From Octopus sinensis (Eukaryota): a DNA stretch of 64,000 nt. The stretch covers positions 55,056,001 to 55,120,000 of the forward strand of contig NC_043008.1 of NCBI RefSeq assembly GCF_006345805.1. The letters are read 5' to 3'. Shown here piece after piece: positions 12,601-49,283 of the stretch. Position numbers and translations under genes: made by a program. The notes beneath the pieces were generated by a model. That model worked only from the letters and a program-made list of their open reading frames with translations, was not told the origin of the DNA and did not search any database. Numbering within the stretch: the stretch's first letter is position 1; the number at the start of each line of letters is the position of its first letter.

Positions 12601-15600
12601 CTCCCTTTCAAATATTTCACTGAGTCGATCACTTATTGAACTGGGGGTACTCATTGTTCTAGATATCCGACTTCGTTGATCGTATATAGATCTAATAATA
12701 CTCTCTCTTTCTGATAATCGACTTTGTTGGTCAGGTATCGTACTTACAATACGAGCTCTTTCATATACTTCACTCCTCACCTCCATTACTGAACTAGGGA
12801 CACTCGCTGTTTCAGCTATTTGACTGCGTTCATCTGGTATCGAACTGATTGTACTCTCTCTTTCTGATAATCGACTTCGTTCGTCTGATATTGCCCTGGG
12901 ACTAATTTCTCTTTCAGATGCTTCACTTTGCCATTCTGATACTGAACTGGGAATATGCAACCTTGCAAATATCTGACTTCGTTGATCTGCTATCGACCTG
13001 ACAGGAGTTTCTCTTTCTGATAATCGCCTTCGTTGGTCTGGTAAAAACCTTACTATACCCGCTCTTTCAGACACCACACCCGACCCGCTTCTTATTGAAC
13101 TCGGAATACTCTCTGCTGCAGATATCTGACTTTGCAGATCTGATTTAGATCTAAAAGTGCTCTCGCTTTCTGATAACCGACTTCCTTGGTGAATAATTGT
13201 ACTGGGAACAGACTCCCTTTCAGATATTTCACTCCCTCGGTCAGTTCTTGAACTGGGGAGACTTATTTGTTCAGAAGTCTTACTTTCTTCAACTGATGCC
13301 GATCTGATAGTACTCTCTCTTTCTGATAATCGACTTCGTTCGTCTGATATTGTACTCGGAGTACTCTCCCTTTCAGATACTTCACTCCTGCGGTCTGTTA
13401 TTGAACGGGGAATACTCATCGTCCCCGATATCTGACTTCGCCCCTCTGATATCGATCTGATAGTACTCTCCCTTTCAGATAATCGACTTCGTTGATCTGC
13501 TATTGTACTGGGAATACTCTCTCTTTCAGATACTTCACTCCTGCGGTCTGTTACAGAACTGGGAATACTCATTGTTTCCGATATCTGACTTCGTCCATCT
13601 GATATCGATCTGATAGTACTCTCTCTTTCGGATAATCGACTTAGTTGATCAGCTATTGTACTCGGAATACTTTCTCTTTCAGATATTTCACTTCGACGGT
13701 CCGTTATTGAACTGGGAATACTCATCGTCCCCGATATCTGACTTCGCTGATCTGATATCGATCTGATAGTACTCTCTCTTTCGGATAATCGACTTAGTTG
13801 ATCTGCTATTGTACTCGGAATACTTTCTCTTTCAGATACTTCACTCCTGCGGTCTATTATTGAACTGGGAATACTCATCGTCCCCGATATCTGACTTGGC
13901 CTATCTGATATCGATCTGATAGTACTCTCCCTCTCGGATAATCGACTTCGTTGATCTGCAATTGTACTCGGAATACTTTCTCTTTCAGTTACTTCACTCC
14001 TGCGGTCTGTTACTGAACTGGGAATACTCATTGTTCCCGATATCTTACTTCGCTCATCTGATATCGATCTGATAGTACTTTCTCTTTCGGATAATCGACT
14101 TCGTTGATCTGCTATTGTACTTGGATAACTCTCACTTTCAAATATTTCACTCCGTCGGTCTGTTATTGAACTGGGAATACTCATTGTCTTGGATATTTGA
14201 CTTCGTCCATCTGATATCGATCTTATCCTACTCTCTCTTTCTGATAATCGACTTCGTTGATCTGTCATTGTACTGGGAATACTCTCTCTTTCAGATACTT
14301 CACTCCGATGGTACGTTATTGAACTGGGAATACTCATTGTTCCAGATATCTGGCTTCGATCATCTGATATCGATCTGACTGTACTCTCTCTTTCGGATAA
14401 TCGACTGCGTTGATCTGCTACTGTACTTGGATAACTCTCCCTTTCAAATATTTCACTCCGTCGGTCTGTTATTGAACTGGGAATACTCATCGTTCCCGAT
14501 ATCTGACTTCGCCCATCTGATATCGATCTTATCCTACTCTCTCTTTCAGATAATCGACTTCGTTGATCAGTCATTGTACTGGGAATACTCCCTCTTTCAG
14601 ATACTTCACTCCGTCGGTCCGTTATTGAACTGGGAATACTCGTCATGCCCGATATCTGAATTTGCTCATCTGATATCGATCTGACTGTACTCTCTCTTTC
14701 GGATAATCGACTTCGTTGATCTGCAATTGTACTCGGAATACTTTCTCTTTCAGATACTTCACTCCTGCGGTCTGTTATTGAACTGGGAATACTTATCATC
14801 CCCGATATCTGACTTGGTCCATCTGATGTCGGTCTGATAGTACTCTCTCTTTCGGATAATCGACTTCGTTGATCTGCTATAGTACTGGGAATACTTTCTC
14901 TTTCAGATATTTCGGTCCGACGGTCCGTTATTGAGCTGGGAATACTCATCGTTCCCGATATCTGACTTCGCTGATCTGATATCGATCTGATAGTACTCTC
15001 TCTTTCGGATAATCGACTTCGTTGATCTGCTATTGTACTCGGAATACTTTCTCTTTCAGATACTTCACTCCTGCGGTCCGTTATTGAACTTGGAATACTC
15101 ATTGTTCCCGATATCTGACTTCGCTGATCTGATATCGATCTGACAGTACTCTCTCTTTCGGATAATCGACTTCGTTGATCCGTCATTGTACTGGGAATAC
15201 TTTCTCTTTCAGATATTTCGGTGCGACGGTCCGTTATTGAACTGGGAATACTCATTGTTCCCGATATCTGACTTCGTCCATCTGATATCGATCTGATAGT
15301 ACTCTCTCTTTCGGATAATCGACTTCGTTGATCTGCTATAGTGCTGGGAATACTCTCTCTTTCAGTTACTTCACTCTTGCGGTCTGTTACTGAAATGGGA
15401 ATACTCATTGTTCCCGATATCTGACTTCGCTGATCTGATATCGATCTGACAGTACTCTCTCTTTCGGATAATCGACTTCGTTGATCTGCTATAGTACTGG
15501 GAATACTTTCTCTTTCAGATATTTCGGTCCGACGGTCCGTTATTGAGCTGGGAATACTCATTGTTCCAGATATCTGACTTCGTCCATCTGATATCGATCT

Positions 15601-18600
15601 GACAGTACTCTCTCTTTCGGATAATCGACTTCGTTGATCTGCTATAGTACTGGGAATACTTTCTCTTTCAGATATTTCGGTCCGACGGTCGGTTATTGAG
15701 CTGGGAATACTCATTATTCCTGATATCTGACTTCGCTGATCTGATATCGATCTGACAGTACTCTCTCTTTCGGATAATCGACTTCGTTGATCTGCTATAG
15801 TACTGGGAATACTTTCTCTTTCAGATATTTCGGTCCGACGGTCGGTTATTGAGCTGGGAATACTCATTATTCCTGATATCTGACTTCGCTGATCTGATAT
15901 CGATCTGACAGTACTCTCTCTTTCGGGTAATCGACTTCGTTGATCCATAATTGTACTGGGAATACTTTCTCTTTCAGATATTTCGGTCCGACGGTCTGTT
16001 AGTGAACTGGGAATACTCATCGTCCCCGATATCTGACTTCGCTGATCTGATATCGATCTGACAGTACTCTCTCTTTCGGATAATCGACTTAGTTGATCAA
16101 TTATTGTACTGGGAATACTTTCTCTTTCAGATACTTCACTCCTGCGGTCTGTTATTGAACTGGGAATACTCATCGTTCCCGATATCTTAGTTCGCTCGTC
16201 AGATATCGATCTGATAGTACTCTCTCTTTCGGATAATCGACTTCGTTGATCTGCTAATTTACTCTGAATACTTTCTCTTTCAGATTCTTCACTACGACGG
16301 TCTGTTATTGAGCTAGGAATACTCATTGTACCCGATATCTGACTTCGCTGATCTGATATCGATCTAATAGTACTCTCTCTTTCGGATAATCGACTTAGTT
16401 GATCAGCTATTGTACTGGGAATACTCTCTCTTTCAGATATTTGACTTCGCCGATCTGTTATTGAACTGGGGATACTCATCGTTCCTGATATCTGACTTCG
16501 CTCATCTGACATTGATCTGATAGTACTTTCTCTTTCTGATAGTCGACTTCGTTGATCTGCTAATGAGCTTGGAATACTCTCTCTTTCGGATACTTCACTC
16601 CGCCGGTCTGTTATTGAACTGGGAATACTCATTCTTCCAGGTATTTCACTTCGCTGGTCTGGTGTCGATCTGAAAGAACTCTCTCTTTCTGATGATAGAC
16701 TTCTCTGGGTTTCTATTGTACTGGGAATGCTCTCCCTTGTATATACTTCACTCCGACGGTCCATTATTGAGCTTGGTATACTCATTGTATCTGATATCTG
16801 ACTTCGCAGATCTGATATCGATCTGATAGTACTCTCTGTCTCTGATAATCGACTCCGTTCGTCTGGGATTTTACTGGAAATACTCTCTCTTTCAGATACT
16901 TCACTCAGCCGGTCTGTTATTGAACTTGGAATACTCATTATTCCACTTATCTGACTTCGCTGATCGTATATGGACCTTACAATGCTCTCCGTTTCTTGTA
17001 ATCGACTACGCTGTTCTGGTGTCATACTAAAAATTCTATGTCTTTCAGATATTTCACTCCGCCAGTCTGTTGTTGAAATTGGAAAATACGTTTTTTCAGA
17101 TATCTCACTTCGCTGATCGTATGTCGACCTAACCATGCTCTCCCTCTCTGGCAATCGACTTCGTTGGTCTGGCATCCAACTTAAGACACTCTTTCTTTGA
17201 GTTACTTGGCTTGGCCAGTCTCTTATTGAACTGGGAATACTCGTTGTTCCAGAAATCTGACTTCGTTCGTCTGATATCGATCTTATAGTACTCTCTCTTT
17301 CTGATGATCGACGTTGCTCGTCTGATATTGTACTGGGAGTACTCTCTCTTTCGGATACTTCACTTAGTCGCTCCGTTACTGAACTGACGGGGATACTCAT
17401 CGTTCCTGATATCTGACTTCGCTCATCAGATATCGATCTGATAGTGCTCTCTCTTTCGGATAATCGACTTCGCTGATCTGCTATTGTACTGGGAGTACTC
17501 CGTCTTTCAGATACTTCACTTAGTCGCTCCGTTACTGAACTGGGGGGGATACTCATCGTTCCTGATATCTGACTTCGCTCATCATATATCGATCTGAGAG
17601 TACTCTCTCTTTCGGATAATCGACTTCGCTGATCTGCTATTGTACTGGGAGTACTCCGTCTTTCAGATACTTCACTTAGTCGCTCCGTTACTGAACTGGG
17701 GGGGATACTCATCGTTCCTGATATCTGACTTCGCTCATCATATATCGATCTGAGAGTACTCTCTCTTTCTGATAATCGACTTCGCTGATCTGCTATTGTA
17801 CTGGGAGTACTCCGTCTTTCAGAAACTTCACTTAGTTGCTCCGTTACTGAACTGGCGGGGATACTCATCGTTCCTGATATCTGACTTCGCTGATCTGTTA
17901 TCGATCTGATAGTACTCTCTCTTTCGGATAATCGACTTCGCTCATCTACTTTTGTACTGGGAATACTCTCTCTTTCAGATATTTGACTCCGCCGATCTGT
18001 TATTGAACTGGGGATACTCATCGTTCCTGATATCTGACTTCGCTCATCAGATATCGATCTGATAGTGCTCTCTCTTTCGGATAATCGACTTCGCTGATCT
18101 GCTATTGTACTGGGGGTACTCCGTCTTTCAGATACTTCACTTAGTCGCTCCGTTACTGAACTGGGGGGGATACTCATCGTTCCCGATATCTGACTTCGCT
18201 GATCTGTTATCGATCTGATAGTACTCTCTCTTTCTGATAATCGACTTCGTTGATCTGCTATTGTACTGGGAGTACTCCGTCTTTCAGATACTTCACTCCG
18301 ACGGTCCGTGACCGAACTTGGGGGGATTCTCATCGTTCCCGATATCTGACTTCGCTCATCTGATATCGATCTGAGAGTACTCTCTCTTTCGGATAATCGA
18401 CTTCGCTGGTCTGCTATTGTACTGGGAGTACTCCGTCTTTCAGAAACTTCACTTAGTCGCTCTGTTACTGAACTGGCGGGGGTACTCATCGTTCCCGATA
18501 TCTGACTTCGCTCATCTGATATCGATCTGATAGTGCTCTCTCTTTCTGATAATCGACTTCGCTGATCTGCTATTGTACTGGGAGTACTCCGTCTTTCAGA

Positions 18601-21600
18601 CACTTCACTTAGTCGCTCCGTTACTGAACTGGGCGGGATACTCATCGTTCCCGATATCTGACTTCGCTGATCTGATATCGATCTGACAGTACTCTCTCTT
18701 TTTGATGATCGACTTCTTTGATCTGTTTTTGTACTGGGAATACTCTCTCTTCCAGATATTTGACTCCGCCGATCCGTTATTGAACTGGAGATACTCATCT
18801 TTCCCGATATCCGACTTCGCGCATCTGATATCGATCTGACAATACTCTCTCTTTCTGTTAATCGACTTCGCTGATCTGCTATTGTACTGGGAGTACTCCG
18901 TCTTCCAGATACTTCAGTTAGTCGCTCCGTTACTGAACTGGGGGGGATACTCATAGTTCCTGATATCTGACTCCGCTCATCAGATATCGAGCTGATAGTG
19001 TTCTCTCTTTCTGATAATCGACTTCCTTGATCTGCTTTTGTACTGGGAATACTTTCAGATATTTGACTCCATGGTTCCGTTATTATACTGGGAATACTCA
19101 TTGTTCCTGATATCTGACTTTGCTGATCTGGTATCGATTTGACAATACTCTCTCTTTCGTATAATCGACTTCGTTGATCTGCTATAGTACTAGGAATACC
19201 CTCTCTTTCAGACATTTCGGTCCGACGGTCCGTTATTGAACTGGGAATACTCTTTGTTCCCGATATCTGACTTCGCTGATCTGATATCGATTTGATAGTA
19301 CTCTCTCTTTCTGATAGTCGACTTCGTTGCTCTTGTATTGTACTAGGAATACTCTCTCTTTGATATATCTCACTTCGTTGTTCTGTAATACCTTCCTTTT
19401 CTGAAATCTGACTCCGTCGGTCATGTGTTGAACTAACTGTACTTTCACTTCCAGATATTTGACTTCTTTGTGCTATCGCTGAACTTGGTTTGCTCTCCCT
19501 TTGTGACATCTGACTCTTTTGGTCAACCTTTGGGCTTGGTGTTCTCTTTTTTACACTTATTCGACTCCGCCGGTCTGATTTCGTAGTTGTAGTACTGTCA
19601 CTCCTAGAAATTGGACTTCGTTTGTCTGTTATCGAACTAGGAGTACTCTTTCTTCCCAATATCTTTTTCCGTTGTTCACTTACCGAACTAGGAGTACTCT
19701 TTCTGCTAGATACCTGACTCCGCTTGTCACTAATTGAACTAGGCGTACTAGTACCATCTCTCACGGATCTCTGACTCCGCTGGTCAGTTGCTGAGCGAGA
19801 AGCACTCCTTGATGAGCTAGGACTACTCCTTATTTTGTCAGTTATTGTACTAGGAGTACTCTCTTTTCCAGATATTTGACTACGTTTATCCGGCATATAT
19901 CTAGGAGTAGTCTCTCTTGATGATGTCTGACTTCGTTGGTCTACCATTGAACCAGCGATACTTTCTTTTCCTGATATCTTGCTCTGCTGCTCTGTAACAA
20001 CACTGGGTGTACTTTCTCTTCCATATATAAGACTCTCTTTTTCAGTTATTGTACTATGAGTACTCTCTTTTCCAGATATCTTGCTTCGTTGGTCAATTAT
20101 AGATGTAGGTGTTCTCTGTCTTCCGGATATTTGACTCCGTTGGTCAATTATGGAACTCGGAGTACTTTCCCTTCCAGATATCTGACTACTTTGGTCAATT
20201 ATTGATGTAGGCGTTCTCTGTTTTCCAGATATCTGACTCCGCTGATCTGCAACAGAACTGCGAGAACTCTCACTAAGGAAACTATGGCTTAGATGGGATG
20301 GTACTGCACTGTGAATACTTTCCCTTCCTGAAATCTGACTTTGTTTTATTGTTGAACTCGGAACACTTTCGCTTGGTGGTGTTCGACTCAGCTGGTCTGT
20401 TGCAGAGCTAGTATAACTTTCACTCTCATGCATCTGACTTCGCTGATATGGAACCGAACTAATTATACTCTCTCTTTCTGGTGATAAGATTGGTTGCTCT
20501 GATATAGAACTAGGAGTGCTTGCTCTTGGCGATATTTCACTTTGTTCTCCTATTGCTGAACTAGGAATACTCTCTCGCCCAGATATTTGACTTCGCTGGT
20601 CTGCGATTGAACTTCGAATTCTCTCTCGTACAGTAATTTGACTCTGCTGGTCGGCTACTGAACTGAGACTACTCTCTTTTTCTGACAATTGTACTTGTTG
20701 GTCAGCTATTGAACTAGGAGTACTCTCTCTTCCATATATCTGACTCCTCTGGTCAGCTACCGGACTGAGAATACTCTCTTTTTCTGATAACAGACTCTGC
20801 TCAGATGGCTTTGAAATGGCAATACTCTCTCGTCCTGACAACAGGCTTCGTTGATCTAGAACTGAACTGGGAATGCGACTCCGCTGATCTAGCAAACTAA
20901 GAACACTCTCTCTTCGTGATAATGGACTTCGTTGATCTGTTATTGAACTGAGAATGCTATCCTTTTTGTATACTTCACTCAGTCTGTCTGCCACTAGACT
21001 ATGTGCACTTTCTCTTGTGGACAACTTATCTAGATCTTCTGGTATCGAACTGTGTTTACTCTTTTGCCCAGTTAAAGAAATTGACCGTTCTCTCTCTAAA
21101 CCAAGCAATTCTCTCTCAGACATTTGTCTCTCAGTATCTGTGTAATACGGAGTCTGTATATCCAACAGTGATTTACTCTTTCTTTCTTCACTTAGCAGAT
21201 GCCTACTTTCTCTTGATAAGCTTCCTCTTATACTGTCAATCATCTGACCGCGTGTTTCAATGCCATACTTTGCTAATAAATCGTCTAAACTCTTTTTCTT
21301 TTCTCTTAGATCTAACAGATCTGTTACTGGCATGTATGGTTTTGTCTCTATGTCTGATTGTTGATCTCTGTCTCTCATTTCCAGATGTGACCTTTCTTGT
21401 GGGGATATACTGCTATATTGTTCTGTGACCGGAGGAGAAATTTCGGTAACTGTTGACGTTTGATCTGGCTGTTCTTGGAATGAAACAGCGTGAAGCTTTT
21501 CAGCAGATGGAATACTCGTTGTTACCGGTATCTGACTTCGTTCATCTGATATCGATCTGATAGTACCCTCTCTTTCGGATAATCGACTGGGAATACTTTC

Positions 21601-24600
21601 TCTTTCAGATATTTCGGTCCGACGGTCCATTATTGAACTGGGAATACTCATTGTTACCGGTATCTGACTTCGCTCATCTGATATCGATCTGATAGTGCCC
21701 TCTCTTTCTGATAATCGACTTCGTTGATCAGCTATTGTACTGGGAATACTCTCTCTTTCATATACTTCACGCCGCTGGTCCGTTATGGAACGCGGAACAC
21801 TCATTGTTTCAGATATCCGACTTCGCTGTTCTGTTATCGACCCGATAGCACCCTCTCTTTCAACAGATGGTTGACTTACTTGGTCTGTTAACAGGCTATA
21901 CACTTCCGATATATTATGCCGCGTGTCTCTCACTGTATCATACAGCATTGAAGCCTGCCTTTCAGGTGATGGAATATGCAGTTCTTCAAATACACCTCTT
22001 GAATCATATGTTGGTAGAGTTTCTTTGACATCCCCTATGTAAGTTTCACTTGGCCGTTGTTCAAAGGAACTCTCCACTGTATCTTTTCTGGATATTTGAC
22101 TTCGATGATCAACTGAAGAAGATCTCTTTCTCATACTTATTGGTTTTTGATCGTACATTGGTGAAGTCGGTGTTGTTATGTCATCTGGTGGTATAAAACT
22201 AACATCTACTTTTTTCGGTGCAAATATAGGTGTATCAAAAAAGGATACTCGATAGTGTCCCTTTTTCGATTGTTTTCTCTGTTGCGCTGCTATTGAAGTG
22301 GTTACTTTGTCTTTTTCAGATAATTTCCCATCTGAGTGCAGTTTGTACAGAGTATCTTTTACAGGAAATTGAGTCTCTGGCTCTACCATCGATTTGTACT
22401 TTCGTTCTTGTGTGGGTAACACGTCAAGTTGTTGACGTAATGGCGATTTTTCAAACTCGAAACAAGGTGCTGAAGCCGTGGAAGTCGACTGTTGAACTCC
22501 AGTAATGCGCTGCATCGTTTCCTCAGAAATTCTACTCGGCTGTCCCATGAAAATATCTTGAATCTCTTGGGTAGATAGTGGACTCATCTCTTCTTCTAAG
22601 GAGACAACTTGCATATCTTCACTACGCTGTCTACTTCGTAATTGTTCTAAGGAGATATGCTGCGTTTCCTTTCTAGACAATTGACTCGGCTCTTGTTCTA
22701 ACGAAGATGTTTGCTTCTGCTCGAAAATTGGTTCAATTGGCGGTTGTTCTAAGGAAATAACCATAGATATCGGACTTCGTTGTTGTTCTCTGGAGAAATG
22801 CTGAAAGCCATCGGAAGATCGTCGAACGAACTGTTGATCAAATGCAACGTCCGATGGTTCTTTGGTGTATGTGGGAGATGCTGGGGGGTATAACATAGCA
22901 TCTGGGACTCCTTTCAGTGTGGCTGGCTGTTCTTTCTGATCCGGTGAAATGACTGATCTTTGTAGTATATCACTTCTTGTGATTTCACTTGGATGCATCC
23001 TGCTTGAAGTATACGGCCTTTCCGAAGTTAATGGCATTGTAGTCGATGGGTGTCTTGATGAAACATACTCCCTCTCCTGTACGGGAAACGCACTCATAGA
23101 TTTTACTAGAGGCATGCACTCAACTCCTTGAGCGGAAACATCAGAAAAGCTACCTAACTTAGCTGGTGATGCTCTACCTCTCTCTTCACCTAACGGTCCA
23201 ACTGGCACTTCTCTGGATTCTTTACTCGATGACACCCGTGATTTTCCTTTGAATCCAAAACGCCGTTTACCTTCTTTGCTGCTGCACACTTGTTCTTCAA
23301 AATCTGCCTCTGTCCAGGAAACACGTGGTGTGCTCCGTTTTGGTTTTGACAGCTTTTTTTTAAAGATGCTGGTCTTAGACGGCTTTTTCCCAACTTCTCT
23401 ACAGGAAATATCACTCATATATTCACTCATTTCAATTTCAGAGAGAGTTGTTGCGTCTACATTGCCACGCTCAATCCTTCTTTTGTCAGTATCCTCTGGT
23501 GGCTTCTCTTGAGGAACATCGAGAATTAATTCTGATAGTGGAAACTGAATTATACCTTTCATAGATTCACTGGTTGGTTGGCATGGAGGCTCAAACGATG
23601 ATGAACTAGTCTCGTGTCCTATAGAAGTACTATACGTCTGTCGTTTTGTCGATTTAGTCAACGGAAATGTTGATAATCTATCCCTCTTACCTTTCTGACT
23701 TTCTAGACTTTCTGATGACGTAGAATCCTTGTCAGTTCTCATGATATTAGCAAGCATGCTTTTAAATTTAGTCTTTGATCGATAGTCTTCTGAAGATTGT
23801 TTCTGTGATTTTTTCGACGGTTTGCAAATCGAATCTTCCCGACGTTTTGGTCTGCATACTCTTTTCCCATATTCATTTAATATAGCACTCCGTTTTTCTT
23901 CGATATGATCTGGCAATTCGGAGTGATCTGATGATGAATAATGACATGTTGTTTTTCGTAAAGATTCGTGCAAACTACGCTCTTCGTCACCTTCGTGAAT
24001 CAGTTGGATATTTGTTTCTAATTTATTCCACATTATATCTGATTTCTTTTTATTTATATATTTTCGTACTAAAAGCCAATGAATGCCAATAAATGGCAAA
24101 TAAAAGAAAAAAAAGAAATTCATAATCCCCATTTGCTTTTGTGACAGAGCACGCACTCTTCGCTTCGTTTTGGGGTGCATTGGGTAACCGTCTTTATTAT
24201 ATTTTACAGCTTTATATTGAAGATCTTTATCGAAATATTTACACTGATAGTTGCTTTTTATAAAAACACACAGCCCTGCTTCGCCAATAGATACCGGAAA
24301 ACAAAATCCAAAAATGAGTTTTAACATATTAAGTATCATAAGAAAAAGTAAAACTATACCGAAAATAACTAATGTTTCGTCTCGGAAAATAGCCGTGACC
24401 GGAGAATGGATCATTTTAGCTTTTTTCACTTCACACGGATATGGTGGATCACAACTACATTTACAACCAACTAGACATAAACAGAGTTTGTTTCTTTTTA
24501 AAATAAGGTATTTTGACTTAACTGTTTTCTGATCTTCATTCCATAATTCTATTACACACTGCACTGGAAATTGTAATTTGGCAGTATTTCCAGGAATAAT

Positions 24601-25953
24601 GCCTCCTTCAATAGATTCAAACTTGTGAAAAAATATCACTGTTTCTCCTTGAAATGGGGTCAACGTATAAGTCTTGAACTGTCTATCAGGTTCACAGTTT
24701 AATAATACTTTAAAGTTTCCTGTAATTAGTCCTATGTTAATTACATTTATTCCAATCTCATATTGGTGGCCACTATCTGAAAATGGGTGGCCGTACAAGG
24801 TTCCAATGGATCCTTCACTTAATAATGGAATTGCAGAAGGAAGAAGATCTTTGTTAAGATTTATTATAATATCTAGCTGTGCCCGAACTGAATGCCTTTT
24901 ATTCTCTACAAATAACAACGATTTATTTGATACCCAACCGGGAACTTTTCCAGTATAAGGAGCCATTGGCTTGGTAAAATGCGATAGGAAATATTTTGAT
25001 CTGTCTGACTCCACATTATTGTTCAATTTCTTCAAATTATCTTCAAGCCAGAAACTCAATGGTTGATTCTTGAAACAAGTTTTGACAAAGGATTTTGTAC
25101 AACGGTCGGTCTTTTTCAAAACGGCGCCGGCAACAATTCCTATTGCTCCACAAGATGTTCCTTTTAAATCAAAATATTTTTTCTTAATAAGCAAGTACTC
25201 ATTAACACCTTTTATGTCCGTTTTTGCCTGTGGATTTCTATTGTTTAGGGCCGAGTTTGCAACGGGTATCAATAAATAATTTAAATTTGAACAAATTATC
25301 TGTCTACAACTAAAGTTGGTCTGGTGAAGAACGCGGGCCGTGAAATAAAGGTCGTCGTCTCTCTTCTCGATAGTTTTGCCGTTGACAAGAAAACGATTGC
25401 TTTGTGCGACACTTTGCACTACTTTTACAGCGTGTTTTTCTTTTCTAAAGACCTCTACCATAAGACTTTGAATAATTATAGGGTTGCCGAGAGTATTAAC
25501 AGAATACCATAAAGGATCATATAGAATACAATGCATCTGGAGACTTTCAGGACAGCAGTATCCTTTTGTTTTGTACGACTTACCACCTACATCGGACTGT
25601 TGGCAGAAAGTTCCGGCACTTTTATAATCACCATCACAGGTTTGGTTGTAAGTCATTTCGTATGGTTGATTGTTGACAAATTGCAAAAATTGGAGGGGAT
25701 AACCAACAAGTAAATCGCTGAAGTAAACGCGCAGAGTTACTGAATCTTCGAAAAAAAAAATTTTGTTTGTGGCTAAATCAATCATGGTTTCAACTGTGTA
25801 GAAACGACCTAATTTCCAGTCGTTGTAATTATGTATATCTGCCACAAGTTGCAGTGTTAGATACCGATGGGAATTTGAACTTCGCTGTTCCTCGTCTGAA
25901 TGTTGTAGAAGGACGGTTAAAACATATGTGCTTAGCAATGTCTGTAGCTTCAT
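3673..25953 (-). CDS. HAP2: Giant intronless HAP2/GCS1-like fusexin with a ~6800-aa repetitive Ser/Arg/Glu tail (7426 aa)
   Basis: The ORF track starts at a TTG (26130); the first in-frame ATG is at 25953, giving MKLQTLLSTYVLTVLLQHS, a plausible signal peptide. HAP2 hallmarks: YPLQFLQFVNNQPYE..C..C..GYCC..HC..YDPLWY; HAP2-GCS1 (PF10699)-like motif YLLIKKKYFDLKGTSCGAIGIV..RC..CFKNQPLSFWLED (~25039-25197); Ig-like domain III ending in CLCLVGCKCSC; hydrophobic anchors at ~24298-24375 and ~24067-24132. The frame is open for 22281 nt. Confidence 0.88.
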   Translation of the reverse strand: MKLQTLLSTYVLTVLLQHSDEEQRSSNSHRYLTLQLVADIHNYNDWKLGRFYTVETMIDLATNKIFFFEDSVTLRVYFSDLLVGYPLQFLQFVNNQPYEMTYNQTCDGDYKSAGTFCQQSDVGGKSYKTKGYCCPESLQMHCILYDPLWYSVNTLGNPIIIQSLMVEVFRKEKHAVKVVQSVAQSNRFLVNGKTIEKRDDDLYFTARVLHQTNFSCRQIICSNLNYLLIPVANSALNNRNPQAKTDIKGVNEYLLIKKKYFDLKGTSCGAIGIVAGAVLKKTDRCTKSFVKTCFKNQPLSFWLEDNLKKLNNNVESDRSKYFLSHFTKPMAPYTGKVPGWVSNKSLLFVENKRHSVRAQLDIIINLNKDLLPSAIPLLSEGSIGTLYGHPFSDSGHQYEIGINVINIGLITGNFKVLLNCEPDRQFKTYTLTPFQGETVIFFHKFESIEGGIIPGNTAKLQFPVQCVIELWNEDQKTVKSKYLILKRNKLCLCLVGCKCSCDPPYPCEVKKAKMIHSPVTAIFRDETLVIFGIVLLFLMILNMLKLIFGFCFPVSIGEAGLCVFIKSNYQCKYFDKDLQYKAVKYNKDGYPMHPKTKRRVRALSQKQMGIMNFFFFFYLPFIGIHWLLVRKYINKKKSDIMWNKLETNIQLIHEGDEERSLHESLRKTTCHYSSSDHSELPDHIEEKRSAILNEYGKRVCRPKRREDSICKPSKKSQKQSSEDYRSKTKFKSMLANIMRTDKDSTSSESLESQKGKRDRLSTFPLTKSTKRQTYSTSIGHETSSSSFEPPCQPTSESMKGIIQFPLSELILDVPQEKPPEDTDKRRIERGNVDATTLSEIEMSEYMSDISCREVGKKPSKTSIFKKKLSKPKRSTPRVSWTEADFEEQVCSSKEGKRRFGFKGKSRVSSSKESREVPVGPLGEERGRASPAKLGSFSDVSAQGVECMPLVKSMSAFPVQEREYVSSRHPSTTMPLTSERPYTSSRMHPSEITRSDILQRSVISPDQKEQPATLKGVPDAMLYPPASPTYTKEPSDVAFDQQFVRRSSDGFQHFSREQQRSPISMVISLEQPPIEPIFEQKQTSSLEQEPSQLSRKETQHISLEQLRSRQRSEDMQVVSLEEEMSPLSTQEIQDIFMGQPSRISEETMQRITGVQQSTSTASAPCFEFEKSPLRQQLDVLPTQERKYKSMVEPETQFPVKDTLYKLHSDGKLSEKDKVTTSIAAQQRKQSKKGHYRVSFFDTPIFAPKKVDVSFIPPDDITTPTSPMYDQKPISMRKRSSSVDHRSQISRKDTVESSFEQRPSETYIGDVKETLPTYDSRGVFEELHIPSPERQASMLYDTVRDTRHNISEVYSLLTDQVSQPSVEREGAIGSITEQRSRISETMSVPRSITDQRREVYERESIPSTIADQRSRLSEREGTIRSISDERSQIPVTMSIPSSIMDRRTEISERESIPSRLSEREGTIRSISDERSQIPVTTSIPSAEKLHAVSFQEQPDQTSTVTEISPPVTEQYSSISPQERSHLEMRDRDQQSDIETKPYMPVTDLLDLREKKKSLDDLLAKYGIETRGQMIDSIRGSLSRESRHLLSEERKSKSLLDIQTPYYTDTERQMSERELLGLERERSISLTGQKSKHSSIPEDLDKLSTRESAHSLVADRLSEVYKKDSILSSITDQRSPLSRRESVLSLLDQRSRIPSSVLDQRSLLSGRESIAISKPSEQSLLSEKESILSPVADQRSQIYGRESTPSSIADQQVQLSEKESSLSSVADQQSQITVRERIRSSIADQRSQISGRESIPSSAIGEQSEISPRASTPSSISEQPILSPERESIISSVPYQRSQMHESESYTSSATDQLSRTPPSESVPSSTIKQSQISGRESIHSAVPSHLSHSFLSESSRSSVADQRSQISGKQRTPTSIIDQSSQISGRESTPSSIIDQRSQISGRQRTPTSIIDQRSKISGKESTHSTITEKESLIYGRESTPSVVTEQQSKISGKESIAGSMVDQRSQTSSRETTPRYMPDKRSQISGKESTPSTITDKIRSSPSSSRSASRSATDQRSQRSVRDGTSTPSSISDKRSQVSSRKSTPSSVSEQRKKILGRKSTPSSITDKRSPISRSDSTTTTKSDRRSRISVKKRTPSPKVDQKSQMSQRESKPSSAIAQRSQISGSESTVSSTHDRRSQISEKEGITEQRSEIYQRESIPSTIQEQRSRLSERESTIKSISDQRSQISGTKSIPSSITDRRTEMSEREGIPSTIADQRSRLYERESIVKSIPDQQSQISGTMSIPSIITEPWSQISESIPSTKADQGSRLSERENTISSISDERSQISGTMSIPPSSVTERLTEVSGRRSTPSTIADQRSRLTERESIVRSISDARSRISGKMSISSSITDRRSQISGRESIPSTKTDQRSRSSKRESTVRSISDQRSQISGTMSIPPSSVTERLSEVSERRSTPSTIADQRSRLSERESTIRSISDERSQISGTMSTPASSVTERLSEVSERRSTPSTIADQRSRLSERESTLRSISDERSQISGTMRIPPSSVTDRRSEVSERRSTPSTIADQRSRLSERESTIRSITDQRSQISGTMSIPPSSVTERLSEVSERRSTPSTIADQRSRLSERESTIRSISDERSQISGTMSIPSSITDRRSQISERESIPSTKVDERSRLSERESTIRSITDQRSQISGTMSIPASSVTEQLSEVSERRSTPSTIADQRSRLSERESTLRSIYDERSQISGTMSIPPSSVTERLSEVSERRSTPSTIADQRSRLSERESTLRSIYDERSQISGTMSIPPSSVTERLSEVSERRSTPSTIADQRSRLSERESTIRSISDERSQISGTMSIPVSSVTERLSEVSERESTPSTISDEQRRSSERESTIRSISDERSQISGTTSIPSSIRDWPSQVTQRKSVLSWMPDQRSRLPERESMVRSTYDQRSEISEKTYFPISTTDWRSEISERHRIFSMTPEQRSRLQETESIVRSIYDQRSQISGIMSIPSSITDRLSEVSERESISSKIPDERSRLSETESTIRSISDLRSQISDTMSIPSSIMDRRSEVYTRESIPSTIETQRSLSSERESSFRSTPDQRSEIPGRMSIPSSITDRRSEVSERESIPSSLADQRSRLSERESTIRSMSDERSQISGTMSIPSSITDRRSQISERESIPSTIADQLSRLSERESTIRSISDQRSQISGTMSIPSSITDRRSEESERESIQSKLADQRSRLSERESTIRSISDERTKISGTMSIPSSITDRRSEVSERESIPSTIIDQLSRLSERESTVRSISDQRSQISGTMSIPSSLTDRRTEISERESIPSTIMDQRSRLPERESTVRSISDQRSQISGIMSIPSSITDRRTEISERESIPSTIADQRSRLSERESTVRSISDQRSQISGIMSIPSSITDRRTEISERESIPSTIADQRSRLSERESTVRSISDGRSQISGTMSIPSSITDRRTEISERESIPSTIADQRSRLSERESTVRSISDQRSQISGTMSIPISVTDRKSEVTERESIPSTIADQRSRLSERESTIRSISDGRSQISGTMSIPSSITDRRTEISERESIPSTMTDQRSRLSERESTVRSISDQRSQISGTMSIPSSITDRRSEVSERESIPSTIADQRSRLSERESTIRSISDQRSQISGTMSIPSSITDRRTEISERESIPSTIADQRSRLSERESTIRPTSDGPSQISGMISIPSSITDRRSEVSERESIPSTIADQRSRLSERESTVRSISDEQIQISGMTSIPSSITDRRSEVSERGSIPSTMTDQRSRLSERESRIRSISDGRSQISGTMSIPSSITDRRSEIFERESYPSTVADQRSRLSERESTVRSISDDRSQISGTMSIPSSITYHRSEVSERESIPSTMTDQRSRLSERESRIRSISDGRSQISKTMSIPSSITDRRSEIFESESYPSTIADQRSRLSERESTIRSISDERSKISGTMSIPSSVTDRRSEVTERESIPSTIADQRSRLSERESTIRSISDRPSQISGTMSIPSSIIDRRSEVSERESIPSTIADQLSRLSERESTIRSISDQRSQISGTMSIPSSITDRRSEISERESIPSTIADQLSRLSERESTIRSISDGRSQISETMSIPSSVTDRRSEVSERESIPSTIADQRSRLSERESTIRSISEGRSQISGTMSIPRSITDRRSEVSERESTPSTISDERSRLSERESTIRSASVEESKTSEQISLPSSRTDRGSEISERESVPSTIIHQGSRLSESESTFRSKSDLQSQISAAESIPSSIRSGSGVVSERAGIVRFLPDQRRRLSERETPVRSIADQRSQIFARLHIPSSVSEWQSEASEREISPRAISDERSRLSERESTISSIPDERSQIAETASVPSSVMEVRSEVYERARIVSTIPDQQSRLSERESIIRSIYDQRSRISRTMSTPSSISDRLSEIFERESIPSKIEDQRSRLSEGEGTIRSISGPRSQISGTLSIPSSIIDRRSAVSERESMTRTMTEPTSRLSGTESTITSISGPRSQISGTMSIPSSIIDRRSAVSERKSTPSTMTEQRSQLTGSESTITSISGPRSQISGTMSIPSSMTDRRTEMSERESIPSSMTDQRSRLSERESTVRSISDQRSQISGTMSIPSSITDRRTEISERESIPSSMTDQRSRLSERESTIRSISDGRSQILGTMSIPSSITDRRTEISERESIPSSMTDQRSRLSERESTIRSISDGRSQISGTMSIPSSITDRRTEISERESIPSTMTDQRSRLSERESTIRSISDGRSQISGTMSIPSSITDRRTEISERESIPSTMTDQRSRLSERESTIRSISDGRSQISGTMSIPSSITDRRTEISERESIPSSMTDQRSRLSERESTIRSISDGRSQISGTMSIPSSITDRRTEMSVRESIPSTMTDQRSRLSERESTIRSISDQRSQISGTMSIPSSMTDRRTEMSVRESIPSTMTDQRSRLSERESTIRSISDGRSQISGTMSIPSSITDRRTEISERESIPSSMTDQRSRLSERESTIRSISDGRSQISGTLSIPSSITDRRTEISERESIPSSMTDQRSRLSERESTIRSITDQRSQISGTMSIPSSITDRRTEISERESIPSTMTDQRSRLSERESTIRSISDGRSQISGTLSIPSSITDRRSEVSERESIPSTMKDQRSRLSERESTIRSISDQRSQISGTMSIPSSITDRRTEISERESIPSTIADQRSRLSERESTIRSISDGRSQISGTMSIPSSITDRRTEISERESIPSTMTDQRSRLSERESTIRSISDQRSQISGTMSIPSSIKDRLSEVSERKSIPSTMMDQRSRLSERESIVRSISDAQSQLSGTLSIPSSITDRRSEVSERERIPSTMTDQRSRLSERESTIRSISDGRSQISGTMSIPSSITDRRTEISERESIPSTMTYPRSRLSERGSTVRSISEGRSQIAETMSIPSSITDRRSEVSERESIPSTMTDQRSRLSERESTVRSIADQRSQISGTMSIPSSITDRRSEVSERESIPSTIADQRSRLSERDSTIRSISDDRSYTSGTMSTPSSMTDRRSEVWMPDHRSRLSERESTVSSISDGRSEMSRTRSVRSSTSSRRSDVTERESVPSTFTEQRSRLSERESTIGLTSDDRSQISGSMSISTSEADRRSDVTDKESIPSIIAAHRSRLSEKEVTQSPVSDIQSPISEREKIHSLTPEKWSQISERERMEVSTADQRSATPSKRTIRSSIADIRSQISRSMRSLISPLDKRSRISEKESIPTSIAHQLSQLSGKENILSSPPVEVSHVSERESIPSLMRDQRSQISGRESILSSMADQRSISSGRERIHSSKEEQPSSITRIQSISREMGDQHSQITGQDSRVSLRHSTLSRSDSNLSSVQDQESHISEPPSIRSSLSEELSQISGKHSRVSTVPEQWSKPSRTESLRISVPDEQISGRESIQSPLSLQRSEIFERERMHSNVLSQRSRDDESASFKTFIPEQGSRITERESIVRSIPDQRSRLYETVSTERPFSEERQLSKSDISVQSGPDERSYTSRREIIRSLTTEPSIISGREGIPGSMIDRRSQISGKESTLSSMTDQRSLTSGRESTPSSMTDRRSQISGRESIPSTMRDRRSQISGRESIPSSMRDERSQISGRESIPSSMRDERSQISGRESIPSSMRDERSRISERESIPSSMRDERSQISGRESIPSSMRDERSQISGRESIPSSMTDRRSQISGRESTPSSMRDERSQISGRESTRSSMRDERSQISGRESTRSSMRDERSQISGRESTPSSMRDERSQISGRESIPSSMRDERSQISGRESTRSSMRDERSQISGRESTPSSMRDERSQISGRESIPSSMRDERSQISGRESTRSSMRDERSQISGRESIPSSMRDERSQISGRESTRSSMRDERSHISGRESIPSSMRDERSQISGRESTRSSMRDERSQISGRESIPSSMRDERSQISGRESIPSSMRDERSQISGRESIPSSMRDERSQISGRESIPSSMRDERSQISGRESTRSSMRDERSQISGRESIPSSMRDQRSQISGRESIPSSMRDQRSQISGRESIPSSEQHSHVSERDSIFSSTPEQRTQTSRSESSLSSIVDQPSEASVSECMLQSTPDEQLQISRGESARTSIPNQRSQISDRWNTFSSMQDQENQVFHRESILGSVPEQWSQVFLRRESIQRSEPNQRSQISESENIRQTIAPHLTYISARESTPSLIVELGSHISDRASIHSSTSDQRSQITGKESFVSSLPDQGSQISEKERIFTPVTDQRRQVSERESSFSSVPGHRSQVFQGESVPSSVADQMSQKSGSEIVYTPVSNEWRQLSRNESIVGSTPFQRSQISGRESIPGSMMDQRSQISGKVSTPTSIRDQRSQISGRESIPGSVTDQRSQIFEREGTSSSMTDQRSQISGRESTPSSMRDQRSQISGRVSTPSSTTDQRSHLSGRESIPGSMMEQRSQISGREGTPSSMRDERSQISGRESTPGTMTGQQSEISGREGSPSSMREQQSQISSRENIPSSATSRSTSHRPLSEISSGRSIRQDTNTSVGEVLDELSRSSRTQSSLADFPAGIQPRDSYVVSSQQSRYESDVALTETSNESSRSQATTVIRNESDSARALSKSSSSHSSQTSRSSSSDKISTNSNALRSTLDKSQNNNISVKKYVGKTAKKFDKPGTSQKKKSTNLNSKNFLGNRKKNQIDSSQNADQDRSDDLMDKSENTSSYAADGFPMKQAQKKDRTQKSQGRENICEGEYVCEEKTESGLDNNSSNNKAVASTSRFCKDTIKVCSESAQGMQSSTTDKEYVNKLVKSEKVYYNFPESSRNLINSGDKFSLYGALRKDGNRYVFRLMQFLEQTYENIDGIARPLQGRKILISNSYVFNRYLDCSGVLSFITKKPKYPCLNNPD
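6210..7740 (-). repeat. Homogeneous coding tandem array, 51-bp unit (SGRESIPSSMRDERSQI), about 30 copies
   Basis: The 17-aa unit can be read directly in the translation, with near-identical DNA units. Confidence 0.95.
9230..19370 (-). repeat. Coding higher-order array, 153-bp unit (3 x 51 bp) with a 156-bp variant block at ~17300-18960
   Basis: Unit SERESTIRSISDQRSQI-SGTMSIPSSITDRRTEI-SERESIPSTIADQRSRL. The variant adds one codon (IPPSS/IPASS/IPVSS). Degenerate zones lie at ~12230-13300 and ~16650-17300. Confidence 0.95.
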
Positions 25954-26372
25954 AATTCCACCATAATTAATGAAATTTAAATCGTCAACAATATTTGATT
26001 GGATGAGCGAGACAGAGGAATATAGAAAAATACAACATGAAGAAATATATAATTGTATATATACCGAATTATGCAAATAAGCACACGAGAAATGAAAACC
26101 AAAAAGCTTACTGATTTTATATATCTTCAAAAAGCGGGATTCTTATCTATTATGTTCATTTTAATATCCATCCTTCATGAAAATGTCAGACAGTTGGCAA
26201 TATCGCGTTTGTTTAGCGTCATTCTTTTTGAAACAACCTATTTCTTCTCAACGCTGTTACTTTGAATTTGACTCCCTGTTGATAAAGATCGGTTCTGATT
26301 AAATGTACACCATGGATTATTATTACTGATTTCAACATCGGTGGGGTAGATACCGGAAAGGAGTCATTAGTT
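25887..26372. repeat. 5' flank and signal-peptide tract nearly identical to 46049-46535
   Basis: By-eye alignment gives about 11 differences in ~490 bp. Confidence 0.9.
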
Positions 26373-26639
26373 GTAACTCATTTATTTTACTAATTTATGT
26401 TCTCCTACACATGGTAATATTTATGACTACTGTGCGTGCGCGTAATCACGTGACTGTGTGTGTGCGTGTGACAATGAATAAATTATCCAATCTATTTATA
26501 GTTAAATCCATTTAATTGTATATATTGTATATCATCCGACGATTAAAATCATTGATGATCTATCTGTCAGTATTTTTGCTCAGTAAAGGAATTCCTCATA
26601 AAACTTTACAGATACGGCACGCATAAATCCCGGCTTTCA

Positions 26640-26890
<251 letters not shown>

Positions 26891-27304
26891 GAGTACGACA
26901 ATTATTGACAAATTGTCTTACCCGAGATGTTAAAGACAATCGCTTTCAGCAATGGCTTTCCTGATATTTAATGTCAATAACAGCTTGCACATCACCATTA
27001 AAAACTCTCACCTAAACAGCTACGTAATCCAGAAAAAAATAGGAATAAGACCCTCCAGCTTCGCAGTGAGGTGGGTGCTCTTTTGGAATTTCCTTCTCCA
27101 AGAGAAATATCTTAAACAAGGACCGGGGAGCTCTCATTCCTATCCGTGGGATGACCGTTGATTTTCCTGACTTCTTTCGTCCTTTTCATAGGTTTTGTTT
27201 TAAACAGAAAGTACCCTTACCAAACAAACTTAGTATGGTTGTCTGTTTTGTCATCAACAGCCCAACCATATGATAGGTTGTACTGGGATACCTGTTGCCA
27301 GTAG

Positions 27305-27342
27305 CATACATACATACATACATACATACATACATACATACA

Positions 27343-27376
<34 letters not shown>

Positions 27377-27515
27377 CACACACATACATACATATATACA
27401 TACATACATGCATACACACACATACATACATACACACATACACACACATACATACATACATACATACATACATACATACATACATACATACACACATACA
27501 TACATACATACATAC

Positions 27516-27546
<31 letters not shown>

Positions 27547-28760
27547 CATACTTACATACATACATACATACATACATATATACACACATGCACACATACA
27601 CACATACATACATACATACATACATACACACATACATATATACACACACATACATACATACATACATATATACACACATACATACATACACACACACATA
27701 CATACATACATACATACATACACACATGCACACATACACACATACATACATATATATACACACACATACATACATGCATACATACATACATGCATACACA
27801 CACATACATGCATACACATACGTACACACATACATATATACACACACACACATACATACATACATACATACATACACACATACATACACATACATACGTA
27901 CACACATACACACATACATACATACATACATACATACACACACATACATACATACACACATAAACACCTACATATATACATACACACATGCACACATACA
28001 CACATACACACATACATACATACATACATACATATATACACACACACATACATACATACATACATGCATACATACATGCATACACACACATACATGCATA
28101 CACATACATACACACATACATACATACATACATACATACATACACACACATACATACACACACATACATACATACACACATACATATATACACACATACA
28201 TACATACATACATACATATATACACACATACATACACACACACACACATACATACATACATACATACATACATACATACATACATACACATATACACACA
28301 TACATACATATATACACACACATACATACATACATACATACAGGCATACATACACACATACATCCATACACATACATACACACATACACACATACATACA
28401 TACATACATACACACACATATATACACACATACACACATACATATATACACACATACATACATACATACATATATACACACACATACACACATACATACA
28501 TACATACATACATACATACATACACACACACATACATACATACATACACATACATACATACACACATACCCACATACATACATACATACGCACACACACA
28601 TGCATACATACATACGCACACACACATGCATACATACACACACACATACACACATACATATATGCATACATACACACACACACGCACATACACACATATA
28701 CATACATACATACATACATACATACATACATACATACATACATACATACATACATACATA
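27305..28760. repeat. ~1.45-kb compound (CATA)n/(CA)n microsatellite
   Basis: Direct inspection. It is the source of the spurious YVCM/HTYI ORFs. Confidence 0.95.
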
Positions 28761-28779
28761 CCCGTCTACTCGTGACCGA

Positions 28780-29525
28780 AGAAGACCATTGCTGAAATTT
28801 AGGAACATTGTGCGCTCTAGGACTAACTTATATTTAGCATTTGCGGCTCCGTTGGTGGCTAATGAGCCCTGCTCTTGACAAGCATATAAGACTGAAAACA
28901 TTGCAAACTAGAATTTCCCCATTCACTACACCAGCAGTGCACATTCAAGCAGCATTCTTAAGTTCTTCATGCAGAATGTGGAAGCACTCCGTCGGTTACG
29001 ACGACGAGGGTACCGGTTGATCCGAATCAACGGAACAGCCTGCTCGTGAAATTAACGTGTAAGTGGCTGAGCACTCCACATACACGTGTACCCTTAACGT
29101 AGTTCTCGGGGATATTTAGCGTGACACAGAGAGTGACAAGGCCGGCTCTTTGAAATACAGGTACAACAGAAACAGGAAGTAAGAGTGAGAGAAAGTTGTG
29201 GTGAAAGAGTACAGCAGGGATCACCACCATCCCCTGCCGGAGCCCCGGTCTGGGAATCGAAACCGCGATCCTACGACCGCGAGTCCGCTGCCCTAACCAC
29301 TGGGCCATTGCGCCTCCACTTCATGCAGAATACGTGCTCTCTCAAAGGTATCGACCTCCTCCTTAACCTGCTTCCTCCATCTGTGGCGATGACAGGTATT
29401 GCTCTCCCTGTCAGTCTCCTGCATACCACAGGCCTTTAATGAGGATTTGACACAGTCCTTAAATCGCAGCAGATGTCTCTTTCCATTTACAAGTTCCCCA
29501 TATAACTTTGTTTGTTCTGAGTAGA
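28780..29525 (-). mobile_element. RTE-clade LINE 3' relic split by a SINE
   Basis: The minus-strand peptide LYGELVNGKR..LRFKDCVKSSLKACGM..RWRKQV..FE matches the typical RTE post-RT region. Confidence 0.6.
28978..29318 (-). mobile_element. tRNA-derived SINE, family B, internally deleted, 13-bp TSD
   Basis: Head ggaggcgcaatggcccagtggttagggc with A and B boxes. TSD cttcatgcagaat at 28965-28977 and 29319-29331. Confidence 0.85.
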
Positions 29526-29814: not shown

Positions 29815-29885
<71 letters not shown>

Positions 29886-30057
29886 ATATATATACGACGG
29901 GCTTCTTTCAGTTTCCATCTACCAAATCCACTCACAAGGCATTGGTCGGCCCGGAGCTATAGCAGAAGACACTTGCCCAAGGTGCCACGCAGTGGGACTG
30001 AACCCGGAACCATGTGGTTGGTTAGCAAGCTACTTACCACACAGCCACTCCTGCGCC
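29583..30057 (-). mobile_element. tRNA-derived SINE, family A, with internal (TA)n
   Basis: Head ggcgcaggagtggctgtgtggtaag, CORE-like ccttgggcaagtg, tail gactgaaacaagtaaaagagt. Multiple copies occur in the window. Confidence 0.85.
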
Positions 30058-40910: not shown

Positions 40911-41291
40911 TTACTTGTTTCAGTCATTTGACTGTGGCCATGCTGGAGCACCGCCTTTAGTCGAGCAAATCGAACCCCAGGACTTATTCTTTGTAAGTCT
41001 AGTACTTATTCTATTGATCTCTTTTGCCGAACCGCTAAGTTACGGGGACGTAAACACGCCACCATCGGTTGTCAAGCGATGTTAGGGGAACAAACACACA
41101 CACACTTACACACACACACACACATACACGACGGGCTTCTTTCAGTTTCCGTCTACCAAATCCACTCACAAGGCTTTGGGCGGCCCGAGGCTATAGCAGA
41201 AGACACTTGCCCAAGGTGCCAAGCAGTGGGACTGAACCCGAAACCATGTGGTTCGTAAGCAAGCTACTTACCGCACAGCTACTCCTACGCC
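40911..41291 (-). mobile_element. SINE family A
   Basis: Match to the other family A copies. Confidence 0.85.
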
Positions 41292-48894: not shown

Positions 48895-49283
48895 TTTCCT
48901 TGTTTCAGTTATTTTGACTGCGGCCATGCTGGAGCACCGCCTTTAATCGAGCAACTCGACCCCGGGACTTATTCTTTTGTAAGTACTTATTCTATCGGTC
49001 TCTTTTGCCGAACCGCTAAGTAACGGGGACATAAACACACCAGCATCGGTTGTCAAACAATGCTAGGGGGACAAACACAAACACACAAACATACACACAC
49101 ATATATATATATACATATATACGACAGGCTTCTTTCAGTTTCCGTCTACCAAATCCACTCACAAGGCATTGGTCGGCCCGAGGCTATAGTAGAAGACACC
49201 TGCCCAAGGTGCCACGCAGTGGGACTGAACCCGGAACCATGTGGTTGGTTAGCAAGCTACTTACCACACAGCCACTCCTGCGT
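48895..49283 (-). mobile_element. SINE family A
   Basis: Match to the other family A copies. Confidence 0.85.

Follow-up and report, generated by a model that had tools for sequence, protein, structure and literature searches.

Octopus HAP2 homologues with a six-residue connection at the position of the fusion loop

Identification of the genes

Two genes of the HAP2/GCS1 family were analyzed in a 64,000-nucleotide stretch of Octopus sinensis DNA (NCBI RefSeq assembly GCF_006345805.1, contig NC_043008.1, positions 55,056,001 to 55,120,000), referred to as the window. In HAP2, an ancient protein of sperm-egg fusion, a c-d loop of 25-45 residues normally enters the membrane of the partner cell. 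This fusion loop, with its disulfide and the Arg-Glu clamp, is taken to be both universal and essential in the family. Published alignments are anchored on these elements, their mutation destroys fusion in Chlamydomonas and Arabidopsis, and the loop is a transmission-blocking vaccine target in parasites. Both octopus genes are encoded on the minus strand. Copy 1 (3673-25953) was identified from the list of open reading frames (ORFs), the Pfam family PF10699 and AF2/Foldseek modelling, and consists of one coding exon with 7,426 codons and the stop. The ORF is uninterrupted from 3673 to 26130, and translation from the probable start at 25953 (MKLQTLL) leaves an open frame of about 22.3 kb. It encodes, in order, a signal peptide, a class II ectodomain, a transmembrane (TM) segment, a giant repetitive tail and a conserved C-terminal domain. 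Copy 2 (43720-46115), recognized from its ORFs and its homology to copy 1, is a partial tandem duplicate comprising the ectodomain, the TM segment and a short tail. Its reading frame in the window falls into two ORFs, 45327-46292 and 43720-45444.

Copy 1 matched the Pfam family HAP2-GCS1 (PF10699) with 86.6 bits against a cutoff of 27.4, covering residues 57-484. This was the sole family matched in a Pfam scan with a maximum E-value of 1, and no match to the EFF/AFF family was found. The AF2 model of residues 1-526 (predicted local distance difference test score, pLDDT, 76.6; predicted template modelling score, pTM, 0.63) has the three-domain fold of class II fusion proteins. The top Foldseek matches of the model were the solved HAP2 structures 6DBS, 7S0K, 5OW3 and 5MF1, with E-values from 1e-24 to 1e-21, followed by archaeal Fsx1, EFF-1 and viral Gc/class II proteins. 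The predicted layout of copy 1, with signal peptide, ectodomain and C-terminal TM anchor, is that of a type I membrane protein. Apart from the c-d connection the fusion machinery is kept, including domains I-III, the ij-loop signature, the Cys-rich stem and the TM anchor.

The c-d connection

The minus strand at 25528-25557 in copy 1 translates to CCPESLQMHC and that at 45693-45722 in copy 2 to CCPESVQIRC, and the spacing from CC to (H/R)C is six residues in both (CC-PESLQM-HC and CC-PESVQI-RC). The anchors were aligned by phmmer with the solved Chlamydomonas and Cyanidioschyzon HAP2 and by MAFFT with 9 and 28 family members. The octopus KGYCC aligns to the family KGFCC, and HCILYDPLWYSV aligns to HCLRFDPVWYSV. 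The original prediction, based on sequence alone, was that this segment is nearly deleted in both paralogues and that no intron lies at this point. Both statements were borne out, as the anchors of the six-residue connections align clearly and the frame of copy 1 is unbroken through the site. The lengths given there for comparison were likewise correct, with 27 residues in Arabidopsis (CC-PCGPQRRMPSSCGDIFDKMIKGKANTA-HC in PDB 5OW3; about 27 had been given) and a longer interval, 43 residues, in Chlamydomonas.

The family set comprised 86 hits from a full HMMER representative search, in 39 of which both anchors were recognized by pattern. Among these 39 representatives the c-d interval was 24-157 residues in 35, animal groups included, 10 residues in three tick proteins and six in P0002, a relative of the octopus copies described below. 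The interval is 30 residues in Trypanosoma cruzi, 33 in Cyanidioschyzon merolae, 37 in the bivalves Solemya velum and Pecten maximus, and 32-37 in nemerteans, a spider, hemichordates and a sea anemone. A connection of six residues is thus not normal for animal HAP2. A short loop is not confined to the octopus clade, as ticks independently evolved a 10-residue version that keeps the two loop cysteines. A word-indexed protein search for relatives returned a single weevil protein, no relatives were found in a metagenome scan with patterns of the short-loop clade, and no paper describing HAP2 in cephalopods was found in a search of open-access and preprint literature.

Residues lost from the tip and residues kept

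The published alignment of the HAP2 tip is anchored on nine invariant residues, namely seven cysteines, the strand-b Glu and the c-d Arg (Fedry et al. 2018, PMC6089408). In the b-c-d region five cysteines were present in octopus copy 1, copy 2 and P0002, against seven in the other 25 aligned members (one of which has eight). What the octopus copies and P0002 lack are the second Cys of CxC and the Cys of RGGQxC (tip cysteines 5 and 6), together with the Arg of the latter motif. The remaining conserved cysteines of the octopus copies are all kept. The two lost loop cysteines seem to pair with each other, since they were lost together and since ticks keep both across only five intervening residues.

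The Glu that normally pairs with the cd-loop Arg (residue 99) lies in the alignments at the end of strand b, in QPYE at 25657-25668 of copy 1, and is present as RPYE at 45819-45830 of copy 2. The clamp Arg itself is absent from both copies. The Arg of the copy 2 segment occupies the conserved His position directly before the last Cys. The prediction that cysteines and Arg had gone with the loop, and that copy 1 has no Arg there, was therefore correct and extends to the clamp Arg of copy 2. Retention of the Glu, predicted for both copies, is true of both of them and fails in P0002, where the residue is Asn.

The ij-loop signature of copy 1, CFKNQPLSFWLED (25039-25077, minus strand), was located by alignment and keeps the family-conserved Gln; the roles of this Gln (Q379) and of the strand-b Glu have been described (PMC5332557). 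Copy 1 reads CFKNQPLSFW, and copy 2 keeps the Gln without the Pro and Trp. Variable region 1, the tip loop next to strand b as defined in PMC6089408, is MTYNQT in copy 1 (25639-25656, minus strand), only six residues long, compared to 13 in bivalves and nemerteans. Immediately ahead of the first tip cysteine each octopus copy has an N-x-T sequon (NQT, 25636-25647, in copy 1; NET, 45798-45809, in copy 2), and P0002 has none. A glycan on this predicted sequon would, in both copies, face the target membrane.

In the AF2 model of copy 1, strands 131-134 and 139-144 are joined by a four-residue turn, and the block has a pLDDT of 87-88. Identical strand-turn geometry was obtained in a separate AF2 model of P0002. 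None of the six residues is aromatic, and a Glu is present among them in both octopus copies and in P0002. The Wimley-White interfacial energy of the six residues is +2.3 to +2.9 kcal/mol (+2.4 and +2.9 in the octopus copies), whereas the best window is negative in most other HAP2 loops. A membrane-insertion element, whether loops or an amphipathic helix, was not found in the c-d connection of the octopus copies, which is modelled as a hairpin.

Age of the loss

P0002 is 33% identical to copy 1 and is encoded by an intact ORF of 1,163 codons with a 5' leader of 495 nucleotides, on 4.2-kb contigs from several read sets, including ERR14857104, ERR12370320 and ERR12370321. The contigs look like transcripts because of their A-rich ends and their recurrence in several read sets. 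A canonical-loop relative, P0037, came from a read set different from those of P0002. In the tree, octopus copy 1, copy 2 and P0002 form one clade with 100% bootstrap, next to the bivalves. The loop deletion predates the octopus duplication and the split from the P0002 lineage, judging from the sequences, since P0002 clades with the octopus copies and carries the same six-residue gap at 33% identity.

Synonymous divergence (dS) between copy 1 and copy 2 is 0.60, and the ratio of nonsynonymous to synonymous divergence (dN/dS) is 0.58. The ratio is 0.56 in the tip region and 0.37 in the TM region. In a relative-rate test with P0002 as outgroup, 39 unique changes were counted in copy 1 and 53 in copy 2 (p = 0.14). 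It had been predicted from the paralogue pair that the truncation is old and maintained. The first part stands, although it is best demonstrated by P0002 rather than by the pair, and the second stands in part only, as constraint between the copies is moderate.

Copy 2 and the Octopus vulgaris assembly

A public protein, P0001, encoded on OX597825.1 (GCA_951406725.2), has exactly the sequence of the downstream copy 2 ORF; the Octopus vulgaris reference genome has been published as GCA_951406725.1 (PMC10700109). The identity between the window and OX597825.1 is about 98% in intergenic DNA and 99.8% across copy 2. Over the 2,901 aligned bases of copy 2, five substitutions and two single-base indels were observed, none of them within 45693-45722. 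OX597825.1 reads copy 2 through as an intact ORF of 798 codons. The frameshift is present in the window only, due to a 1-bp difference in an A-run (45431-45433, minus strand), which reads AA in the window and AAA in the alignment to O. vulgaris OX597825.1 (L004). The missing base reflects either a null allele or a fault of the assembly. The frameshift at first favored a pseudogene, and this assignment of copy 2 was rejected as the main reading on the intact public ORF and the relative-rate test, which gave no excess of change. Copy 2 is homologous to copy 1 only as far as the proximal tail and has neither the repeat array nor the conserved C-terminal domain.

A copy-to-copy comparison showed 97-100% identity between 25901-26400 (minus strand), which holds the signal-peptide codons of copy 1 with the 5' leader and the upstream region, and about 46062-46561 at copy 2. 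Beyond this shared 5' tract the coding sequences are only 70-86% identical, and dS is 0.14 in the signal-peptide codons compared to about 0.5-0.9 elsewhere. On the strength of this step in identity the two segments are probably a recent gene-conversion tract, which would give both copies the same promoter.

Gene structure and surroundings

The HAP2 gene of Solemya velum has at least 19 coding exons over 45 kb. The octopus HAP2 type is lineage-specific and intronless, and because of this difference in exon number it is retrogene-like; the octopus gene looks like a retrogene that was later tandemly duplicated. Introns between the regions of strands b, c and d are known from intron-rich genomes (Fedry et al., PMC6089408). 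In Solemya a single exon encodes the complete GFCC...HCLRFDPVW, both anchors included, and loss of the loop by exon skipping is thereby ruled out. No poly(A) remnant of a retrocopy was seen downstream of copy 1, only an AATAAA about 180 nucleotides past the stop codon. A tblastn comparison with Solemya velum JBHNWI010000646.1 gave overlapping imperfect matches at about residues 564-631 and 621-673 of the annotated HAP2, which may reflect a flaw in the gene model or in the local assembly.

The remaining features of copy 1, all on the minus strand, are as follows. The predicted signal peptide MKLQTLLSTYVLTVLLQHS (25897-25953) was recognized from the sequence and aligns with the N-terminal hydrophobic leader of P0002. 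The TM segment LVIFGIVLLFLMILNMLKLIFGF (24304-24372), likewise recognized from the sequence, was aligned with the corresponding segment of the relatives. About 55 residues past the TM helix lies a second hydrophobic segment, MGIMNFFFFFYLPFIGIHWLLV (24067-24132; NxxFFFYLPF..HW), which has basic residues on both flanks, is conserved across bilaterian HAP2 in the alignment and has a counterpart in copy 2. Its predicted topology is either re-entrant or that of a second span. The tail of copy 1 is about 6,640 residues long (approximately 3955-24030) and is rich in Ser (24%), Arg (13%), Ile (10%) and Glu (10%). Tandem Repeats Finder located in it a tandem array (4831-19386) of 51-nucleotide (17-residue) units in higher-order repeats of 153 and 306 nucleotides, and the repeats are all in frame in the single exon. 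The tail of P0002 consists of its own, unrelated 11-residue repeat. The conserved C-terminal domain of about 93 residues (3676-3954; VYYN...FSLxG...QTYEN...KPKYPCLN) is common to P0002, Solemya, Pecten, nemerteans and P0037. No Pfam family scored above threshold with the C-terminal domain, the TM region or the tail repeats.

Just upstream of copy 1, at 26600-28900, about 2 kb of microsatellite-like arrays (TATG/CATA, TG-rich) were observed, which account for long spurious ORFs in several frames. The region 29000-64000 contains many interspersed repeats of 150-300 nucleotides in both orientations, with 62-100% identity to the reference copy of each direct-repeat family (for example 29856-30050, 41090-41284, 49083-49277 and 62705-62899), and these look like SINE-type (short interspersed nuclear element) repeats. 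The window holds no further long ORFs, and an Rfam scan of it gave no match.

Interpretation

The octopus genes are genuine homologues of the HAP2/GCS1 class II fusogens, and their homology and fold, as well as the extent, age and rarity of the loss, are firm. The genes appear to be functional. An ancient deletion removed the whole membrane-insertion segment, two cysteines and the clamp Arg and left a tight beta-hairpin. Because the tip is without a lipid-seeking element, the octopus protein is most likely unable to anchor unaided in the opposite membrane and would probably be tethered through protein contacts before fold-back; this is the reading preferred here, held tentatively and with slightly less than even confidence. 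The contact might be made with an identical protein on the other cell, a bilateral arrangement comparable to that of EFF-1/AFF-1, or with a partner on the egg surface. Both options, and the repurposing discussed below, were raised with the original prediction and are reasonable. After tethering, the usual class II fold-back would pull the membranes together.

Several points weigh against this reading. A role in gametes is assumed by analogy with the family, with the transcript-like contigs of P0002 as a hint, and the presence of the same protein or of a partner on eggs is putative. The contrast in hydrophobicity is weaker within animals than towards algae and protists, since bilaterian cd loops are themselves weakly hydrophobic; the two bivalve loops reach only about -0.1 to -0.5 on the Wimley-White scale and two sequences of the chelicerate clade are positive. 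The dN/dS of 0.58 fits relaxed constraint as well. The AF2 models are monomeric and rest on an alignment of 28 sequences. Finally, the tick Ornithodoros carries a second, loop-bearing paralogue, and the part of the octopus genome covered for such a copy was the window.

The ectodomain could instead have been repurposed for adhesion, recognition or scaffolding, without fusing membranes, while the Ser/Arg-rich tail and the C-terminal domain carry the main function. Such repurposing is rather unlikely, yet it fits several observations. Residues essential in Chlamydomonas and Arabidopsis are lost from the octopus proteins. Chlamydomonas HAP2 that carries R185A/Q or F192A/W193A, or that lacks TRA184-186, shows abolished or impaired fusion and liposome binding (PMC5332557), and in Arabidopsis deletion of the fusion helix abolishes function (PMC6089408). 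The moderate dN/dS, the length of the copy 1 tail, the separate repeat tail of P0002 and the coexistence of the tick short-loop form with a loop-bearing paralogue point in the same direction. However, elements needed for fold-back only are kept, namely domain III, the Cys-rich stem, the TM anchor and a membrane-proximal conserved segment. Moreover, no loop-bearing cephalopod HAP2 was found among the representatives with spiralian signature motifs, every named one of which is from a bivalve, a nemertean or a hemichordate.

The protein could also still be a unilateral fusogen. The short c-d turn (Leu/Val, Met/Ile) would then form a blunt tip together with the bc connection and the ij loop, sufficient to engage the egg membrane, similar to the three short loops of T. 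cruzi HAP2. The whole class II apparatus is conserved, and one or two aliphatic residues remain in the turn of all three short-loop proteins. HAP2 tips are also very plastic, with three small loops in T. cruzi (PMC6089408), and the hydrophobicity of other bilaterian loops is itself weak. Against this, aromatic residues are missing from the turn, a Glu is part of it in all three proteins, and its interfacial energy is positive. Variable region 1 is minimal too, with an N-x-T sequon in each octopus copy, and the Arg-Glu clamp that organizes the tip is gone, P0002 having lost the Glu too. Unilateral insertion is accordingly regarded as improbable, slightly more so than repurposing.

That the copies are decaying retrocopies of canonical HAP2, with the missing loop as damage, is very unlikely. 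This explanation would account for the lack of introns against at least 19 coding exons in the bivalve, for the frameshift of copy 2 in the window and for the loss of P and W from its ij-loop motif. It does not agree with an open frame of 22.3 kb in copy 1, an intact copy 2 in the public assembly, a dN/dS below 1 with all other conserved cysteines kept, or the same gap in P0002, which is 33% identical, intact and apparently transcribed. An artefact of misalignment, assembly or a hidden intron is hardly credible. Nothing was found to support it, the sole assembly-level difference seen being the 1-bp A-run of copy 2. Against it, no break interrupts the frame at the site, the spacing recurs in three independent sequences, the copy 2 site is unchanged in the public O. 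vulgaris assembly, and the bivalve CC...HC segment lies in one exon, which excludes exon skipping.

Tethering through protein contacts is thus retained as the preferred reading. A bolder proposal, which is speculative and rather doubtful, is that the cephalopod type of HAP2 is a working gamete fusogen that acts without lipid insertion, through contacts in trans with either its own kind or an egg receptor. It would then represent an intermediate between HAP2 and loop-less somatic fusogens, and ticks would have arrived at the same solution independently. A long-lived natural HAP2 lineage without loop, disulfide and clamp means that the rule of their universality does not hold throughout, and the convergent ticks add weight to this. 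Octopus HAP2 offers a ready test of the debated question whether HAP2 can fuse bilaterally, or via a partner, without lipid insertion, and is a first molecular handle on cephalopod fertilization.

Comparison with known systems

The octopus proteins have the Pfam family and the three-domain class II fold in common with the canonical HAP2 of Chlamydomonas (5MF1, 6E18, 6DBS), Arabidopsis (5OW3), C. merolae (7S0K) and T. cruzi (5OW4). They also share the framework of strands b, c and d (YPL..VNN.PYE, KGFCC, HCL.FDP.WY), the ij-loop Gln and the Cys-rich stem. The TM anchor, the second hydrophobic segment and the C-terminal PCLN domain are shared with bilaterian HAP2, and the closest named relatives of the octopus copies are those of the bivalves Solemya velum (KAL5009314.1) and Pecten maximus (XP_033735139.1). 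They differ from canonical HAP2 in a c-d connection of six residues against 27-43 (37 in bivalves) and in the absence of tip cysteines 5 and 6, the clamp Arg and two N-terminal cysteines. A further difference is the intronless copy 1 with its tail of about 6,640 residues, compared to the at least 19 exons of Solemya.

T. cruzi HAP2 (5OW4) is similar in that it functions without a long loop or an amphipathic helix, by means of short tip loops (PMC6089408). Its own c-d connection, however, is still 30 residues long and contains the Arg and extra cysteines.

EFF-1/AFF-1, somatic cell fusogens of nematodes (PDB 4OJC, 4OJD, 4OJE), have a class II fold without true fusion loops and are needed on both membranes (PMC8777248). 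The octopus model matches them structurally with an E-value of about 1e-12. The TM-score, however, is about 0.27, compared to 0.4-0.5 for HAP2, and the octopus protein does not belong to the FF family in the Pfam scan. EFF-1/AFF-1 fuse solely when the protein is on both membranes, whereas bilateral action of the octopus protein is hypothetical and proposed by analogy.

The 'hapless 2-like' proteins of the ticks Ornithodoros turicata (XP_064484785.1), Ixodes persulcatus (CAN8032015.1) and Rhipicephalus appendiculatus (KAL1487266.1) resemble the octopus proteins in a c-d connection of 10 residues without Arg or aromatic residues and in a variable region 1 cut to seven residues. They differ in that both loop cysteines (CC-NC-x5-C-TV-HC) and the Glu are kept, and in the tree the tick shortening arose independently, inside the chelicerate clade. 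Ornithodoros turicata has two HAP2 paralogues (P0032 versus P0025/P0087), one with a c-d loop of 25 residues that includes an Arg and one with 10 residues, and provides a second, independent system for the study of loop-less HAP2.

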